Origin: Selaginella moellendorffii
Taxonomy: Eukaryota > Plantae > Lycopodiophyta
Direction: 5' to 3'
NCBI RefSeq assembly: GCF_000143415.4
Contig: NW_003314300.1
Location: 1,161,014 to 1,225,013, forward strand
DNA length: 64,000 bases
The notes beneath the pieces were generated by a model. It saw only the letters and a list, made by a program, of their open reading frames with translations, was not told the origin of the DNA and made no database searches. The first letter of the stretch is position 1; the number at the start of each line of letters is the position of its first letter. Position numbers and translations under genes: made by a program. Shown here in pieces: positions 9,836 through 28,824 of this stretch.

Positions 9836-12232
9836 ATATAATACAAAAAGGTGACAAAATCCATTTTTAAAAGACATATGCGAAGTTATAACAACCAAAT
9901 ATGTACTCATTCAAATCATCATTTTCATCTCTACATATGCAATAATACTAATTGCCCTCACTAAAATGTTATCCTTTGATATATAGCTAGCATCTGTCTG
10001 GAGCTGGCCATGAAAATGCCTGAGGTGGCCACCTCTTTTGTCTTGTTTGCTTGAAATTTGAATTTTTTATTTTCTATGTTTAGTTTGACTAACTAAAATT
10101 CCTTACTTGGAAAAAAGGAAAATAATACCATTTAAAAAAGATATCAGAACCAAGAGGGCACGAGAAGTTGAATTTGGCATTTATGAAAACTTTATATTTG
10201 ACATGTCCATCGACACATTAATGAAGATGTTGTTGTTTAAAGATCACACTACCACATTACTCTAGCCATCTCCTACACACTCAGATGCATCAGCTTTATT
10301 TACTCTATCACTAGTTCAAGACTCACAATTGCGGATACTAGATAGAATCCAACTTCAATCATGCTAATAGATCAAAACATTGTGCTATTGATACATGATC
10401 AAGATCTTCCACTACTATCACCGCCACCACCACCACTATCACCACCACCCCTACCACCACCTTTGCCATTACTACAACCATTGGTGCCACCTCCACCTTT
10501 ACTCTTCATTAGCCCACCACTAGCATAAATCCCTAAAGTTGGGTAATCTAGCAATGTTTGTGATAAAGAACCTGGCAAACACCCTAGAGCCAAAAGAATT
10601 GCAGACCTTCTTAATAATATGGTGGACAAGCACTTCCAAAAAATTGTTATGTAGACAAGTGAAAAAAAAATTCACCAAACGCTTGAGGCACTCAAGTGCC
10701 AAGCCCTAATGACTTGATTGGAAATCCCCCTTTGCCATTTACAAGAAATAAATCTTGTGTGCATAACATCCAAGTATGTAACTTAGACATATACAACTTG
10801 TTCAAACGGAATGGTATTGATATGTTTTTAGTCTCTTTCTACAAGCCAGGAACAATGGAGATCGTTACTGTCACACTTGAGATCATAAACAGTTAGGATC
10901 CTATTTGAAAGAGGAAATCTTTTGAATTCGATAACATGCTTATTAGCCATTATAAGACTTAACAACTTGTGGGGACAATGTTCTAAATTTATGACAATAA
11001 TCATCAATATAAACCTTCAATAAAGTGTATTAACAGTTATTTTTTGTAGTGATCCCATCTACCATATCAACATTACAGTTAACCATGTATATGGAAGGGG
11101 ACACCTAAATATCAATATGCTTATCTTAACTTGTCAAAAGATCATTTAAAATTTCACCTTTATTTCCACTTTAACTTGCTTTGCTATATTTGAATGCAAG
11201 CTTAGGCAATTTGCTGTAAAAAAAAACCTTATCCATAATATTGAGCAACTCCATTTTATGGCAGACTTAAGTGAGGATGGTATTTGAAAATATTATAATA
11301 ATGATTTCAAACACTTGTTTGGCACTTGCACACTTAAAATGACAGTACAACATGGTTTAATAACCCAATTAGTTTTATGTTTGTGGTGTGGTGCAAAATA
11401 TATCTTTCCTTTCACTTTATAAAGGCCTCTTTTATTATTTTGGTTTTTAGTCTTTAGTGAAGGTTAAGTAAGATGCTTATAAACTTGTGCATTTGGAGAA
11501 CTCATAGCTAAGCTTGTACAAATTGACCAAATTCAACATGTAAAGTCTTTAAAGTTAAAAAAATTAATATGCATTATAGACAAGCCAAAGGAGTGGCTAA
11601 AGATTATAGTTGAAATTCCTACTCATGAATATAAGTTTCTTATCACATGTTTCAATTACACATATATTACTTTTGCAGTGAACAAAACTCCAGATGACAC
11701 AATTTACAATATTGCAAAATTCAAAGCTTCCATACAAGCAATAAATAGAAACTCTAGAGTCCCTCGATATCTATTTGATAAATAGTTATCTACATCATGC
11801 AAACCATATGCAAAGGTGAAAAGTTCTTGGCACTACACATTTGTGATAATTCATATGGCACATTCACGTCCTTTAATAACAAGCTTTGGAAAGAAAACTC
11901 AAGTTATGCTGAGAATCATGATCAAAAAGCTATCTTATCCATTGTTACACCTCAATGGCATCCTTTGGAAGACAACAAGTAGTAACCATGCTCCACCATA
12001 GCTGAAATTAGAGCATGCAACCACTAGAGATATCCTATTGAAGGCATCCCATGGATGACAAGTTTCCAACTCTAGAAAACATCTCAAACAAAGCTGTTCC
12101 TACTACCACATTGGTGTCAAAGCAACACTCACATACCAAGTCGTGAACCACTTTAGCTCGATCAAGCATCAACCCAGAATGATTTTGTCAGTGTTAGTTT
12201 TCTAGTGAAACGAAATACTCTATTTCCCCTAA

Positions 12233-20720: not shown

Positions 20721-22137
20721 TCAGTCGACCCTGTAGAGGACCACTTCCTGCTGCTTGAAGTAGCGTCTGTCTTCTTCGTCCACCAGAACGAGGTTGAGGA
20801 AGTACTTGACGCTGAACTTGTTGTTGATGTTTCGGTAAGTCGGGGTCAGCTCGTAGGGGCTCAGGAAGAGCCGAATGGGAATGGATTCACCTGAGGAAAA
20901 GCATTGTTAGATCTGAAAGGAGAGGGGAACAAAAGACTTGAAGTTCTCACCGCGGACAGGCGCTCCATCCATGATTTCGAACTTTGCAAGTGTTTCGCTT
21001 TCGTTGTAAGCGTTGGCACCTGAGCCGGTCGACTCTCGCTTTCTAATCTCGATCTCCATATGCTTTATCTTGATGCGGACCAGAAGAAAGTAAATCTTCC
21101 CGACGATTACATCCTTTAAGTGGAATCTGGCACAGAAAAAGCACTCACGCTCAGTTGACACAAAGCATGTTTCCACGTATTCAAAACGCACTTGCTCTTA
21201 TTGTACTCGAATTCGATATGCAAGCAATCCTCGATGCCGACCTCCATCTACAAAGAGAAAAAGCTTTTTTCAAAAGCAAACTATCGATGTTTTCACCTTG
21301 ATGCTGTTGTTCACGTCGGGGTGCGTTTGAAAGTTTCGAACCTGGAAAAACGAATTGTAAGAGCGATGAAAATGTTTCTCCACAAGTATCAAGTTACCCA
21401 GAAATCCTTATATTCCACAATCTTAGGTACGTAGCTGCGAGTTATAGTCACCTTAAGAACATATCTAGCAAAACAATCCATTACAAAAAATATCCAAGCC
21501 GTGAATTTCTACCTGAGCCTCACGTTGACACCATTGTACGAGTCATATTGCATTTCCACTGACGAAAACTCGAAAGGATAGATTTTCCTCTCGTGAATCA
21601 CACCCGGAACATCGAGCTCCCTCACTGTAGAACACGAAACGGAAGTATCAGATGACAATCTAGAGCAAAAAACAAACTCACACACCCAAGGAAGTGAAGT
21701 CGTAGAAATTCCCTCGGTCGAAGTAAAACTCTGGCAATCCACAAACCAAAATCAGCGAAACAAGAGAAACGCAAAAACTAACGCACCTATTTGGCCAAGA
21801 AGCTCAATTTTCACTCCTTGATGCTCGATCTTCCGGCCAGGAAGAGGATCGATACGCACCTAAACAGAAAAAAAAATTACTAAAAATTGGGAAACAAGGA
21901 TGATCCAACCGACCTCGCCAGTAACACTCTCCTGGCCCTGGAAAAGAGGCACCATCCCCATCTGGCCATTCTCCTTCTTGATGCTCGCCTGGGAAAGACC
22001 AACGATTGCTAAGCTAACCCCGCTAGGTCAAGAAAGAGCGAAGGCACAGTCCAGACCTGCTTGCGCGACTCCATGTCCGAGAGATCGATCGAGATGACAC
22101 ACGGCTGACCAAAGGCTCCCGCGAAGAGGCTCTGCAT
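20721..22137 (-). CDS. VPS26: Retromer subunit VPS26 (intact, multi-exon)
   Basis: MQSLFAGAFGQPC..., IEHQGVKIELLGQI, FDRGNFYDFTSL, YPFEFSSVEMQYDSYNGVNVRLR, MEVGIEDCLHIEFEYNKS, LAKFEIMDGAPVRGESIP, LVDEEDRRYFKQQEV. Confidence 0.96.
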
Positions 22138-22339
22138 TGCTGCCGCCCTCTCGTGCCCTTGCTCTTTCGCGCTCTAGCTCACAGAAATAGAGAATATTCG
22201 AAGCATCTAGGGCTAATGTACGTCCATGCCAGATCAGAACATTAAGGTTTGTCTTTCTAGGAAGTACAGAGTTTCACTCTTTGATATACTCGTCTCCGCC
22301 ACCTCTGCATGGAACGAATTTTCAATATACGTTGTTATA

Positions 22340-23508
22340 TCACTTCCAAGATCGTGCCATTATAGCTAGACACTGTTGACAGTAGAAGATGACCTCATCA
22401 GGTGCTTCATCGTCGGAAAACCCAGCACAATCCATATGGTACCATCCAACCTTACACTGCAAAAACCAAAGAATTAGTTCTAGCGATTATAATGAAAACT
22501 TACTTCAGCATTGTCACAGAGAATCATTTTTCTCCCATCATCTCTCCCCTGGCAGCTACAATAAAGCTTGTCATCGATCTCAGGGTTCAGTGGCAACCTG
22601 TCAACAATGATCCTGTTCCTCTGGTACTCTCTGAAGAGGAGATCCATAATGTGCTTTTGGAGTTCATAAAGATCCCACTCCACGAGAAAGTCATGCTTCA
22701 GTTCAACATTTGAAGACAACCAGCTCAAAGGAAACCTCAAGCAGAATTTGTCCCTATTATCCTCAGAGCACACCTTTGGACTAAAATTGAGGTCTTTACA
22801 CCTCTTCCCATCTTCTTTCCAGAAACAGTTAAGTTTGACATGTAGAGTATCCAAGGTTCTTTTCGACTCAATTTTAATCTCAACCGCTAAACGGCACCTA
22901 GTTTGTTCTCATCCTTTAACCTCTGCTTTGAGTGTTTCCACATCCTCATTTTTGTATGCGACTTCAATAGTGCACTTTGGGTATTCTTCATCGTCAATAC
23001 TTGAAAAGGAAGCATCTGATTCTTTGTAAGATCCATTTGTTAGTTTGAAAATGGTACTGCCCTTAGTGTGAACTAATTTGTGGAACCTTGGCACATCCTT
23101 TGTTGGAAAGTGAGTCGCAAAAAAGTTAGTTGCTTGTTCCACCACTTCAACAACAAACCACAAAGTTGTCACCTCATGCACTTCAGAAGGGTCACCAAAG
23201 AGATAAATTGTCCCAAACTCTCCTCCCTCGAGCTCGTAAAAGAATCCCAATCTCCAACAAGTCTCAATTGAAAGAGACCAGATCTCCCAGGTGCCGCTAG
23301 ACACAGTCTCTGCAATGACAAAGGGCCCATGGCCAATCCCTGATGCACTTACTTGTAAGTACTTTGCAACAGCATGCTTAAATCCTTCATTCAGTCGCTT
23401 CAATTCCTGCTGTGCCTCCATTTGTTTGTTGTCTTTGAACTTGAAAAGCTGGACAATCTGTTTTTTTTCTAAGCTTTTCCTTTTTCCTAACACCCTAGCC
23501 TCTGCCAC
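22340..23508 (-). pseudogene. Uma2-like PD-(D/E)xK nuclease domain fused to C-terminal PHD finger, copy 1 (one in-frame TGA at 22909-22911)
   Basis: GDPSEVH..., KESDASF, YPKCTIEVAYKNE..L..EVKG*; then LYCSCQGRDDGRKMILCDNAE / 47-bp GT-AG intron 22457-22503 / CKVGWYHMDC...FYCQQC. Confidence 0.7.
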
Positions 23509-23554
23509 CCTTCAAACCCTAATGTGTTTTAATATACGATATTATTTCAACGTG

Positions 23555-24727
23555 GGTCAACGGAGAAGATTGAGAAAAACAAACAGGAGGATCCACAAGA
23601 CTAACCTACTCTTTTCAAATCTAATGCTTCGCAAAGCCCCTGATTTCTCTCCATCTTTTGGTCCCGGAAATGGTGGAGGTACACTTTCCCGATCAAGCGC
23701 CTGAACAAGAACGAAAATCACATCAATCGCTCACGAATGTATAAACAAAGCAAGAACGAACTTGCCTGTGCTGGAGAGCACCGCATCGCTATCAAAACTT
23801 GCCGTCCAGAAGAAAAACCCACGCATCTCTTTGCTCTTGAGAAACTCCACCTTCTTCTCGATCGATGCCTGGTTATCGAATCCCACCCACAAATCCCCAG
23901 CAAACGCGTACGCGCTGCTCGTCTCGCCATCGTCTACCACTGTCGCGTTCTTCGACCGGATGAACTCCTGGATCTCGCTGTAGAACAAGACCCCCGTCTC
24001 GGCACTTCCACCCGGCATAGCCGGCCCGGGCCCCCGCGCAGCAGCACCGACGCCGTGATCCAGCGACGAGTTTTCCAGCAGCCACGATCGCCCATACGCG
24101 GCCAAGCCCATCACCGCCTTGTGAGGAGGAAGCCCGCTATCCAGCCACGATTGGATGCCATAGCTGGAGCTTAGATTTGACGAGAGATCTGTGAGAGCCG
24201 AGTGCTCGCCGGTGAGAGATGGCTCCCAGGCCGTGGTAGTCGTAGCACATGATGTTCGCCCAGTCGAGTGTTCTAGCCATGGTTTGTACTGGGTACTCGT
24301 AGCGCATGCCCGGAATCGAAGGGTCCATGGCCATGGTGCTGTAGTACACCGCTGCAGTGAGTAGCAATCGGTTGCGATACGTCGACTGTGCCTCGAAGAC
24401 GATTTCTTTGGCGGAGCTCGGAGAAGAGCGAAGCTATGTTGGTCATATCGGCTGGCGAGTGAGGGAATTCCAAGTCCACGTCGATGCCATCAAACCTGGA
24501 AAGTGATCACACAAAGTTAGATCTATTCTTCCAAGAACTCCGGAAGATAGTGTTAACTTACCCGTAACTTCGTAATGCTACTCCGCACGAATTCGCCCCT
24601 GCTGGAACTGTTGCTCGCCATCTGCGAGAAGAACGTCGTGTTGGCCCCGGCGCCACCTATCGAGAGGAGGGCCTTGACCAGGCTCGTACACTCTCGCGCG
24701 ATATCGATGTTCTCCACCGGGATTTCC
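23555..24727 (-). pseudogene. GH18 chitinase 3' duplicate (no signal peptide, frameshifted)
   Basis: Near-identical to 27312-28513 with small deletions (e.g. at ~24230) that split the ORF. Confidence 0.88.
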
Positions 24728-25805
24728 CCTGAGCCGGTCGACTCGCACTTTCTAATCTCCATCTCCATATGCTTTATCTTGATGCGGACCAGAAGAAAGT
24801 AAATCTTCCCGACGATTACATCCTTTAAGTGGAATCTGGCACAGAAAAAGCACTCACGCCCAGTTGACACAAAGCATGTTTCCACGTATTCGAAACGCAC
24901 TTGCTCTTACTGTATTCGAATTCGATATGCAAGCAATCCTCGATGCCGACCTCCATCTACAAAGAGAAAAAGCTTTTTTAAAAAGAAAACTATCGATGTT
25001 TTCACCTTGATACTGTTGTTCACGTCGGGGTGCACTAGAAGTTTTCGAACCTGGTAAAAACAAAGCGTAAGAGCGATGAATGTTTCTCCACAAGTATCTC
25101 ATTACCCAGTATTCCACAATCTTAGGTACGTAGCTGCGAGTTATAGTCACCTTAAGAACATATCTGGCAAAACAATCCATTACAAAAAATATCCAAGCCG
25201 TGAATTTCTACCTAAGCCTCACGTTGACACCATTGTTACGAGTCATATTGCATTTCCACTGACGAAAACTCAAAAGGATAGATTTTCCTCTCGTGAATCA
25301 CACCCGGAACATCGAGCTCCCTCACTGTAAAACACGAAACGGAAGTATCAGATGACAATCTAGAGCAAGAAACAAACTCACACACCCAAGGAAGTGAAGT
25401 CGTAGAAATTCCCTCGGTCGAAGTGAAGTCGTAGAAACTCTGGCAATCCACAAACCAAAATCAGCGAAACAAGAGAAACGCAAAAACTCACCTATTTGGC
25501 CAAGAAGCTCAATTTTCACTCCTTGATGCTCGATCTTCCGGCCGGGAAGGGGATCGATACACACCTAAACAGAAAAAAAAATTACTAAAAATTGGGAAAC
25601 AAGGATGATCCAACCGACCGCGCCAGTAACACTCTCCTGGCCCTGGAAAAGAGGCACCATCCCCATCTGGCTATTCTCCTTCTTGATGCTCTCCTGGGAA
25701 AGACGAAAGATTGCTAACCCCGCTAGGTCCAGACCTGCTTGCGCGACTCCATGTCGGAGAGATCGATCGAGATGACACACGGCTGACCAAATGCTCCCGC
25801 GAATT
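24726..25805 (-). pseudogene. VPS26: VPS26 5' duplicate (start codon deleted, 3'-truncated, fused to chitinase)
   Basis: Colinear with 21017-22137; gcaatgcagagcctcttcgcg became gcaattcgcg; short duplication in the FYDFTS exon; ends at STGSG. Confidence 0.9.
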
Positions 25806-25989
25806 GCTGTGCTCTTTCGCACAGAAATAGAGAATATTCTAAGCATCTAGGGCATTAAGGTTTGAACATTAACATTAACATGAACATTAAGGTTTGTCTT
25901 TCTAGGAAGAAGTACAGAGTTTCACTCTTTGATCATATCTTGTCTCTGCATGGAACGAATTTTCAGTGTATTTTGAGTCCTTGCCTTGC

Positions 25990-27184
25990 TTTGTATCACT
26001 TCCACATTATAGCTAGACACAGAAGATGATGTCATCAAGTGGTTCATCGTCTGCAAACCCAGCACAATCCAAATGGTACCATCCAACCTTACACTGCAAA
26101 AACCAAAGAATTAGTTCAAGCAATTATAATGAAAGCTTACCTCGGCATTGTCACAGAGAATCATTTTTCTCCCATCGTCTCTGCTACAATAAAGCATATC
26201 ATCGATCTTGGGGTTCGATCTCGGGGTTCACTGGCAACCTGTCAACAACGATCCCGTTCCCCTGGTACTCTCTGAAGAGGGCAGTCATAATGTGCTTTTG
26301 GAGTTCATAGAGATCCCACTCCACAAGAAAGTCATGCTTTGGCTCAACATTTGTAGACAACCAGCTCAACAGAAACTTCAAACAGAATTTGTCTCTATTA
26401 TCCTTGGAGCACACCTTCGGACTAAAATCAATGTCTTTGCGCCTCTTCCCAGCTTCTTTCCAGAAGCAGTTGAGTTTGACATGCAGAGCATTTGAGGTTT
26501 TTTTTTACTTGATTTTAATTCCGATCGCTAAACGGCATCTAGCCTGTTCCCATCCCTTAACCTCTGCTTTAAGTGTTTTTATATCTTCATTTTTGTACGC
26601 GACTTCGATGGCACACCTTGAGTACTCTGCATAATCAATACTCGAGAATGAAGCATTTGGTTCTTTGCGAGATCCATTTGCTAACTTGAAAGTGGTGCTG
26701 CCTGCAACAAATACCAATTCACAGAACCTTGGCACATCCTTTGCTGGAAAGTGAGTTGTGAAGAAGTTAGCCGCTTGTTCTGACACTTCTAGAACAAACC
26801 ATGAAGCTGTTGCCTCGTGCAAACTGGAAGGGTCACCAAAGAGATAAACTGTCCCAAACTCTCCTCCCTCAAGCTCGTAAAAGAATCCCAATCTCCAAGA
26901 AGTCTCCATTGAAAGAGACCAGATCTCCCAAGAGTCGTAGGACACAGTCTCTATGACAACAAAAGGCCCATGGCCAACCCCTGATGCACTTACTTCTAGG
27001 TATCTTGCAATTGCGTGCTTGAATCCTTCATTCAGTTGCTTCAATTCTTGTTTCACCTCCATTTTCTTGTCGTCTTCAAGCTTGAAGCCACCGAGAAGTT
27101 GGACAATCTGCTTTTCTTCTACCTCTGAGCTTTTCATCTTTTCTAGCGCCCTTGCTACTACATCTGACCTCACACACACGCCAT
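25990..27184 (-). pseudogene. Uma2-like nuclease-PHD gene, copy 2
   Basis: KEPNASF, AIEVAYKNE..L..EVKGW; in-frame TAA at 26505-26507; PHD lost Cys residues by deletions; same intron retained. Confidence 0.7.
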
Positions 27185-27311
27185 TTCCCACTGCCCAAGA
27201 ACTCTTCAAACCCTAATGTGCCACCTTAACCCTAATCTGTGATGACTTGTCGCTACTAATATGGTTTGTATACATGTACGAATTAATATTGAGAATATCA
27301 ACGCCATTCCG

Positions 27312-28824
27312 TCAACGGAGAAGATTGGGAAAAGCAAACAGGAGGATCCACAAGACTAGCCTACTCTTTTCGAATCTAATGCTTCGCAAAGCCCCTGATT
27401 TCTCTCCATCTTTTGGTCCAGGAAATGGTGGAGGTACACTTTCCCGATCAAGCGTCTGGGAGGCTGTGCAACAAGAACGAAAATCACATCGAATGTATAA
27501 ACAAAGCAAGAAAGAACTTGCCTGTGGTGGTGAGCACCGCGCCGCTATCAAAACTTGCCGTCCAGAAGAAAAACCCACGCATCTCTTTGCTCTTGAGAAA
27601 CTCCACCTTCTTCTCGATCGATGCCTGGTTATCAAATCCCACCCACAAATCCCCAGCAAACGCGTACGCGCTGCTCGTCTCGCTATCGTCTACCACTGTC
27701 GCGTTCTTCGACCGGATGAACTCCTGGATCTCGCTGTAGAACAGGACCCCCGTCTCGGCACTTCCACCCGGCATCGCCGGCCCGGGCCCCCGCGCAGCAG
27801 CACCGACGCCGTGATCCAGCGACGAGTTTGCCAGCAGCCACGATCGCCCATACGCGGCCAAGCCCATCACCGCCTTGTGAGGAGGAAGCCCGCCATCCAG
27901 CCACGATTGGATGCCATAGCTGGAGCTTAGATTTGACGAGAGATCTGTGAGAGCCGAGTGCTCGCCGGTGAGAGATGGCTCCCAGGTGCCGTGGTAGTCG
28001 TAGCACATGATGTTCGCCCAGTCGAGTGTTCTAGCCATGGTTTGTACTGGGTACTCGTAGCGCATGCCCGGAATCGAAGGGTCCCTGGCCATGTTGCTGT
28101 AGTACACCGCTGCAGTGAGTAACAGTCGGCTGCGATACGTCGACTGCGCCTCGGAATCGATTTGTTGGCGGAGCTCGGAGAAGAGCGAAGCTATGTTGGT
28201 CATGTCGGCTGCCGAGTGAGGGAATTCCCAGTCCACGTCGATGCCATCAAACCTGGAAAGCGATCACACAAAGTCAGATCTATTGTTCCAAGAACTACGG
28301 AAGATAGTGTTAACTTACCCGTAAGTTCGTGCCAAGGAGATGCTACTCCGCACGAATTCGCCCCTGCTGGAACTGCTGCTCGCCATCTGCGAGAAGACCG
28401 TCGTGTTGGCCCCGGCGCCACCTATCGAGACGAGGGTCTTGATGAGCGGATTCTTGCTCTTGGCCAGGCTCGTAAACTCTCGCGCGACATCCATCGTCTC
28501 CACCGGGATTTCCACCCGGAAAGTTGTGCTGTTGACGTTCGCGAACGCGAAGCAGAGGTGCGTGTACACGTCTGTGCTGAGATCCGATGCTGGGAACATC
28601 TGCGAGGCGTAGGATGGCCAGTAACCAACCTTGACTTTGTCCCATTTCTCATCTCCAGGTGGTGAGCTCCGCGGTGCTCTCGCTGGTGCTCCTACGGGTG
28701 CTCCTACGGGTGCTACCGCGGGTGCTCTCGCAGGTGCTTGTTGAGCTTCCGCTAAACCGGGATCAAAACGAAAGAATGCGACGCTCAGAACTGCAAAACA
28801 TATTACAAGCGAGTTGATCATCAT
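27312..28824 (-). CDS. GH18 (class V) chitinase with Ala/Pro-rich N-terminal linker and hydrophobic C-terminal tail, 3 exons
   Basis: Signal peptide, YTHLCFAFA, SIGGAG, FDGIDVDWEFP (DxDxE), IMCYDYHG, GFFFW. Exons 28824-28319, 28252-27522 (GC donor), 27463-27312. Confidence 0.93.

Follow-up and report, generated by a model that had tools for sequence, protein, structure and literature searches.

A chitinase-flanked Uma2-PHD gene in two broken copies

We analyzed a window of 64,000 nucleotides (nt) from the lycophyte Selaginella moellendorffii (NCBI RefSeq assembly GCF_000143415.4, contig NW_003314300.1, positions 1,161,014 to 1,225,013 of the forward strand), focusing on a gene that joins a restriction-endonuclease-like domain of the Uma2/DUF820 type to a C-terminal PHD finger. 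Within the window, tblastn found two copies of this fused gene only. Both lie on the minus strand, and we refer to the two blocks of DNA that they represent as X blocks. We are fairly confident that they are tandem pseudogene copies of a lineage-specific Selaginella gene, whose first domain is PD-(D/E)xK-like and whose finger belongs to the class that reads trimethylated lysine 4 of histone H3 (H3K4me3). Neither copy would encode an uninterrupted frame after splicing, and the locus presumably makes no full-length protein. The features of the two copies are as follows (coordinates are those of the window, except for those at L001 and L006, the loci of two further paralogues).

22340..23421, minus strand: copy 1, gene for a Uma2-fold domain and a PHD finger, about 344 codons with one internal stop, ATG at 23421
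23421 to 22504, minus strand: exon 1 of copy 1
22456 to the stop codon at 22340-22342, minus strand: exon 2 of copy 1
22600..23330, minus strand: Uma2/DUF820-type restriction-endonuclease-fold domain of copy 1
22909..22911, minus strand: in-frame TGA of copy 1, replacing a Trp that most of the family conserves (consensus L..E...W)
22370..22566, minus strand: PHD finger of copy 1, C4HC3, with eight ligands once the intron is removed
22457..22503, minus strand: intron interrupting the copy 1 PHD finger, 47 nt, phase 0, GTAAGT...TTGCAG
25996..27062, minus strand: copy 2, dead fused gene, with TGG at the site of the copy 1 stop
26094..26140, minus strand: intron of copy 2, 47 nt, GT..AG
22420-22540, 26057-26177, L001:11365-11485 and L006:6836-6956: near-invariant intron region of the four paralogues

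A reading of the DNA made from the sequence alone (hereafter, the sequence-only reading) had joined the open reading frames (ORFs) 22909-23508 and 22480-22854 into one frame. Our analysis agrees: translation meets a single stop, the TGA at 22909-22911, which is the sole interruption of the frame, and copy 2 reads TGG at the aligned position. In the nuclease fold, the stop lies ahead of core strand 4 (IKI). The frame likely starts with the ATG at 23421 and not with the GTG at 23508, because this ATG aligns with Met1 of P0002, an intact paralogue. Splicing out the 47-nt intron joins ...MILCDNAE to CKVGWYHMDC...FYCQQC and so yields the complete C4HC3 PHD finger that had been predicted; as the intron contains an in-frame TAG, the frame is kept by splicing only. 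Only one public sequencing run carries the locus, as a 936-nt contig (22615-23550) that is 100% identical, includes the same TGA and begins about 130 nt upstream of the ATG. This contig may be a transcript fragment. A candidate second intron in copy 1 (GT..AG-like, 48 nt, about 23307-23354) was ruled out: the stretch encodes the conserved GPF motif, and the public-run contig is colinear across it.

With the intron removed, the finger of copy 1 shows the canonical C4HC3 zinc-ligand spacing with all eight ligands. Its halves were scanned separately against the Pfam PHD profile (PF00628; gathering score 24 bits), and the first half matched profile positions 1-25 with an expectation value (E) of 0.019 (15.5 bits), the second half positions 22-47 with E 8e-4 (19.8 bits). 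In sequence searches against PDB, the best matches of the second half were PHF2 (E 1e-4), CFP1, PHF8, ING3, PHF23, and ING1, and those of the first half were DIDO1, PPS, and Spp1 (E 0.4-0.6, by themselves without significance). All these best matches are H3K4me3 readers. The C-terminus is a real, intron-split PHD finger, and the copy 1 finger is by sequence a member of the H3K4me3-reader class, with putative binding to the mark. It had been described as ING-type, of which the reader class stands and the specific attribution does not: PHF2 ranks above ING3 and ING1, so the finger is not specifically ING-type, and no ING-domain Pfam match was found in the window pieces, the region upstream of the finger being the Uma2 fold and no ING N-terminal domain.

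For the upstream domain, the motifs GDPSxVHE, KE(P/S)DASF, IEVAYKNE, and IKI are present, in line with the pattern already recognized in the sequence-only reading, and an alignment shows them to be conserved in about 25 homologues. The motifs of the family alignment are GDPSxVHE (with an invariant His), KEPD, xEVAYxNE, L..E...W, and IGIKI, and a C-terminal part (F.P..C ... FDL..LQ) is also conserved. The D of GDPS, the invariant H, the D of EPD, the E of EV, and NE are kept in about 25 members, distant ones included. Copy 1 keeps the family-conserved D (GDPS), H and E (VHE), D (KESD), E (IEVAY), NE, and K (IKI).

The fold was assigned through an AlphaFold model of the intact paralogue P0002 (266 residues), built with the family alignment, which reached a predicted local distance difference test score (pLDDT) of 89 and a predicted template modelling score (pTM) of 0.83. 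When this model was searched with Foldseek, the top seven chains were all Uma2/DUF820 proteins or “putative restriction endonuclease”, among them 1wdj, 3ot2, 6okh, and 9y1l (E 1e-6 to 3e-4), followed by 3ijm. The match covers residues 27-250 of the model, so that the upstream domain and what follows the stop make up a single Uma2 domain, cut mid-way by the TGA. The Uma2/DUF820 restriction-endonuclease fold that had been proposed for the upstream domain is thus borne out by structure (model against 1wdj and 3ot2) and not by a Pfam profile; as a model-based assignment the fold is well supported, whereas profile-level membership in PF05685 is not. A PF05685 match had been expected, and Pfam gave none for any window piece. 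Across the window pieces and 30 homologues, no Uma2 match rose above threshold, and the best PF05685 score in the 25 alignment members was a single one at E 0.049. A search of PDB sequences with the family profile returned only the HGF N-terminal domain for the C-terminal region (E 0.4, chance level), a match that we discarded because this region belongs to the Uma2 fold.

Paralogues, distant relatives, and past selection

In sequence comparisons, broken frames were read through with X, or stop codons were skipped. Copy 2 carries a stop (TAA, 26505-26507) and is thrown out of frame ahead of the PHD finger by a 13-nt insertion. A 9-nt deletion in the region of the finger’s first ligand pair takes away the second Cys region, and a 10-nt deletion takes out the last Cys pair; in addition, the conserved Asp of KEPD is replaced by Asn. 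A third fused copy, at L001:10400-11545, shares the intron and the PHD exons but is broken by three TAG stops and by a deletion within PHD exon 2. The X block (10331-11700) is all that this locus has in common with the window, and its genomic surroundings are different. The gene model P0001 (D8TAR8), 74% identical, sits on this third copy. The model spans L001:6001-11281 (1242 residues), joining Pro/Ala-rich repeats to the pseudogene and skipping its stops, and is likely an annotation artefact. Downstream of the same copy, a tRNA-looking stretch was rejected after ARAGORN found no tRNA in it. The fourth fused copy, L006:6768-8124 (minus strand; GL377743.1), contains several frameshifts and a Tyr in place of the third zinc-ligand Cys, and adjoins P0020, an intact-looking paralogue. 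It is flanked, at 87-93% identity, by the same Vps26/chitinase chimera that occurs in the window (described below), which indicates that the composite unit has itself been copied more than once. Copy 2 and the L001 and L006 copies each miss zinc ligands.

The 47-nt gap is common to all four paralogous copies. Over the intron and some 35 nt of exon to either side, they are nearly invariant (0-3 differences), and elsewhere the copies are 14-20% diverged. We found no RNA-structure signal that would explain the invariant intron (z 0.26), and no Rfam match to it.

Outside this group, the distant paralogue P0005 (GL377670.1) has a PHD relic directly past its annotated stop (L005:5115-5261), which matches PF00628 positions 10-47 (E 8.6e-4), lacks the first Cys pair, and is in frame if an acceptor 17 nt downstream of the annotated acceptor is used. 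The relic hints that the fusion may predate the window’s subfamily. Downstream of P0002, no PHD was found.

An exhaustive phmmer search of 1.84 billion representatives recovered 20 homologues (E 8e-54 to 1e-4), which come from S. moellendorffii, two Adiantum ferns, and metagenome or sequencing-run contigs. Every one is annotated as hypothetical, and Pfam detects neither Uma2 nor PHD in any of them. A homologue with the nuclease and the finger in one open transcript, which the sequence-only reading had required, did not turn up: the four fused copies that we read are all broken, and the finger is present in 0/20 database homologues. Word-indexed protein searches returned no matches for copy 2 and eight proteins for the family alignment, none of them with a PHD. 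In the ESM Atlas, searches by features and by shape led to fungal clusters of similar size, one of which is partly annotated as Uma2.

Maximum-likelihood phylogeny groups the plant sequences in one clade (100/100) and the metagenome or run-contig and virus-like sequences in another. Within the second clade, P0015 is encoded at L003:5512-6339 (ENA ERZ22827514 NODE_529) on a densely packed contig that also carries genes for TFIIB, TFIIS, a C962R-type archaeo-eukaryotic primase (AEP), thioredoxin, and DUF5755. This contig looks like that of a giant virus (Nucleocytoviricota). Another member of the clade, P0014, comes from a eukaryotic contig that includes CEP76 fragments. Scans of IMG/VR returned no viral relatives of the family, and a fold search of BFVD gave generic weak nuclease matches only, so that the viral link comes from one contig. 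Two plant members, P0009 of S. moellendorffii and P0011 of Adiantum nelumboides, carry a ubiquitin domain (PF00240, E 1e-16 to 1e-18) at the N-terminus, ahead of the Uma2 fold; the gene model of P0009 further includes SMP and C2 domains and possibly fuses two genes.

Traces of selection remain in the broken copies. For copy 1, copy 2, and the L001 copy, the ratio of nonsynonymous to synonymous divergence (dN/dS) by the method of Nei and Gojobori (NG86) was 0.24-0.36, at dS 0.28-0.50. In the pairs that include copy 1, differences at the three codon positions numbered 53/31/74 (p 1.6e-4) and 56/26/62 (p 4e-4). The codon-position bias together with dN/dS indicates that the fused gene was under purifying selection for much of its divergence. 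The single lesion of copy 1 is likely recent, and copy 2 and the L001 copy have likely been drifting for longer.

Tandem duplication and neighboring genes

Along the minus strand, the order of features is GH18 chitinase, copy 2, Vps26 fragment, Vps26/GH18 chimera, truncated chitinase fragment, copy 1, and Vps26 exons. This arrangement is a 3.7-kb tandem duplication whose breakpoints fall inside two host genes, Vps26 and chitinase. The neighboring features are the following:

27484..28824, minus strand: class V (GH18) chitinase gene in two ORF pieces, adjoining copy 2
24553..24900, minus strand: chimeric Vps26/GH18 ORF (Vps26 PF03643, E 1e-15; GH18 chitinase, E 1e-5)
23731..24479, minus strand: chitinase fragment of tandem unit 1, truncated and frameshifted
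20861..21191, minus strand: Vps26 exon sequence downstream of copy 1, with a duplicate at about 24728-25027

The chimeric ORF at 24553-24900 is the junction mark of the duplication. The fused gene had been said to lie beside a chitinase, and it does adjoin one of the GH18 family: the ORF at 27487-28236 and a class V chitinase annotated in S. moellendorffii are 100% identical.

The flanks of the tandem units (21063-21950 and 23601-24400) are 97-99% identical, whereas the X block (22150-23540) is only 76-89% identical, which means that block and flanks have different histories. Either a diverged paralogue replaced one X block through ectopic conversion, or homogenization acted on the flanks. The X blocks also differ from their surroundings in composition: the observed/expected ratio of CpG is 0.41-0.46 in the blocks (22180-23540 and 25820-27220) against 1.05-1.11 in the adjoining flanks and 0.78 in the whole window. 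This depletion suggests long-term methylation or a foreign composition or origin. Just upstream of each copy we noted a telo-box-like motif (AAACCCTAAT or its complement; 25853-25866 and 27205-27218, and about 23525), which may be a promoter element or chance; that of copy 2 forms a 14-nt inverted pair with the 3' end.

Interpretation and comparison with known systems

In our interpretation, the ancestral product would have been a roughly 300-residue Uma2/DUF820-type nuclease-fold domain followed by a C-terminal PHD finger whose coding sequence was split by the 47-nt intron. The finger would dock on methylated H3K4 tails, and docking would bring the nuclease-fold domain to the DNA of marked chromatin, to cut or to bind it. 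The family would be one of fast turnover, with many dispersed and partly decayed copies, and could possibly have a mobile or viral origin. The sequence-only reading had proposed a chromatin-targeted nuclease at this locus. Since no open fused transcript was found, we infer such a nuclease for the ancestral gene but not as the current product of the locus, whose copies are broken. Nuclease activity, histone binding, and a role in defense or as a selfish element are all putative. The architecture had been thought new, and our literature search found no paper that joins Uma2 and a PHD finger; the pairing appears to be undescribed.

Several points weigh against this interpretation. None of the four fused copies read is intact, and they provide no natural open transcript of both domains; the public-run contig covers 22615-23550 only and ends short of the splice junction. 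The Pfam Uma2 model fails to recognize the domain. Structurally, the P0002 model stands in for the window protein, to which it is about 40% identical, and the first piece of copy 1 folded alone (single-sequence AlphaFold2) gave a pLDDT of 34 and was unusable. The third core strand reads E-V-A, with Ala at the position of the canonical Lys of (D/E)xK; a conserved Lys sits on the next strand (IKI), and copy 1 has both acidic residues that the family conserves, Asp on core strand 2 and Glu on core strand 3. In copy 2 and the L001 copy this Asp is replaced by Asn, and selection may thus have acted on something other than catalysis. Finally, the codon-position signal between copy 2 and L001 is weak (49/33/50, p 0.13), and NG86 estimates of dN/dS are biased downward at a transition/transversion ratio of about 3, which makes the constraint moderate.

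The E-V-A strand bears directly on a different account, in which the Uma2-fold domain is no nuclease here but a catalytically inert module that binds DNA or protein, and the ancestral fusion served as a chromatin reader or adaptor. We regard this as a genuine possibility, though the less likely one. Besides the absent Lys, it would fit the failure of the Pfam Uma2 profile to match, the Asp-to-Asn change that copy 2 and L001 share in KEPD while some coding constraint persists, and the standing of bacterial Uma2 itself, which is only a “predicted endonuclease” (PMC3424549). However, the family-wide conservation of D (GDPS), the invariant H, D (EPD), E (EV), and NE in about 25 members is what a metal site would show, and copy 1 retains all of these metal-site-like residues. 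Another account is that copy 1 is still functional, its TGA being an assembly error, a polymorphism, or read through, or its truncated 170-residue product having a role. The TGA is indeed its sole lesion, with the finger and all conserved nuclease-fold residues intact, and the constraint signal is strongest in the comparisons with copy 1. Yet the public-run contig has the same TGA and no differences (the run may be the assembly’s own sample), truncation at the TGA loses core strand 4 along with all of the fold’s C-terminal half, and the conserved Pro of KEPD is replaced by Ser. To our knowledge, plants have no selenocysteine decoding. A working copy 1 is very unlikely.

A further account concerns the origin of the 1.35-kb X block. 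It might be mobile or viral, either a selfish nuclease gene or a remnant of a giant virus, able to move or convert without its flanks and subject to silencing by the host. The block stands alone in a different context at L001, it has diverged far more than the flanks, and it is depleted in CpG; one family member lies on the contig with TFIIB, TFIIS, the C962R-type primase, and DUF5755, and insertions resembling nucleocytoplasmic large DNA viruses (NCLDV) have been published for S. moellendorffii (PMC4083422). On the other hand, the L006 block travels with the same Vps26/chitinase flanks and so resembles a segmental duplication, the plant clade is separate from the metagenome and virus-like clade, IMG/VR and BFVD yielded no relatives, and a host character is suggested by the spliceosomal intron and the telo-box-like, putative promoter motif. 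A transposon with terminal inverted repeats was considered and rejected: no terminal repeats were convincing, the one 14-nt inverted pair being present in copy 2 only, with none in L001. We consider this origin rather doubtful.

Our preferred reading, of two dead copies of a Selaginella Uma2-PHD gene, bears on the picture of the Uma2 fold. Treated so far as a bacterial predicted endonuclease, it appears here as a multi-copy land-plant family missed by profile databases, one branch of which was fused to a chromatin-reader finger. Should an intact member exist and cleave DNA, nature would offer a nuclease guided by a histone mark on a single chain, which would bear on genome defense, selfish elements, and chromatin-targeting tools. 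Since the copies in the window are dead, their value is evolutionary, as a record of the birth and death of a chromatin-targeted nuclease family. The annotation is also corrected, as D8TAR8 merges one pseudogene into a 1242-residue protein. A much bolder proposal is that lycophytes once had, and perhaps still have, PHD-guided Uma2 nucleases of bacterial or viral type for H3K4-methylated chromatin, which act as selfish elements or in defense or cell death, share ancestry with giant-virus and protist genes, and are held in check by host methylation. We think that this is unlikely.

Among known systems, the closest by fold is Uma2/DUF820/TT1808 (PF05685; PDB 1wdj, 3ot2, 6okh, and 9y1l), listed as a bacterial “predicted endonuclease” (PMC3424549). 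The family studied here shares this fold and escapes the PF05685 profile. It differs in occurring in land plants, in having an extra N-terminal helix and a greater length of about 260-300 residues, and, for the fused gene, in the spliceosomal intron and the PHD finger. Uma2-like hypothetical proteins of fungi (Mucoromycota and Ascomycota), whose clusters are the top matches of the ESM Atlas feature search, have the same extended fold and size, with template modelling (TM) scores of 0.71-0.73 over 222-238 aligned residues. The likeness is one of fold: the exhaustive phmmer search gave no significant fungal sequence match, and no PHD is reported for the fungal clusters.

With the PHD readers of H3K4me3 (PHF2, PHF8, CFP1/Spp1, DIDO1, ING1/3, BPTF, and TAF3), the copy 1 finger shares the C4HC3 spacing. 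Its Tyr (YC), Met (KMI), and Trp (GWYH) stand at what we take to be the positions of the cage residues of these readers. Unlike them, it is joined to a nuclease fold and not to a demethylase, an ING domain, or a COMPASS subunit.

The sequence-only reading had also likened the gene to Crinkler (CRN) effectors, which are defined by an N-terminal LxLFLAK/ubiquitin-like (Ubl) translocation header of about 130 residues (PMC12957317). The comparison fails for the window copies, which have no Ubl/LxLFLAK header: about 35 residues precede the fold, and Pfam finds no ubiquitin match in them. The resemblance that does exist lies in a eukaryotic, rapidly diversifying, multi-copy family with a restriction-endonuclease-fold module, and the N-terminal ubiquitin domain of the paralogues P0009 and P0011 recalls the Ubl header. 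In contrast to CRN proteins, the Selaginella gene is the plant’s own nuclear gene and not a pathogen effector.

For the proposed mechanism, a functional analogy is offered by the V(D)J recombinase, in which a PHD finger that reads H3K4me3 (in RAG2) directs a DNA-cleaving enzyme (RAG1) to marked chromatin. The analogy is one of function only: the RAG recombinase has a catalytic domain of the RNase H fold, carries reader and nuclease on separate subunits, and has no homology to the Selaginella fusion, which would have placed both on a single chain.

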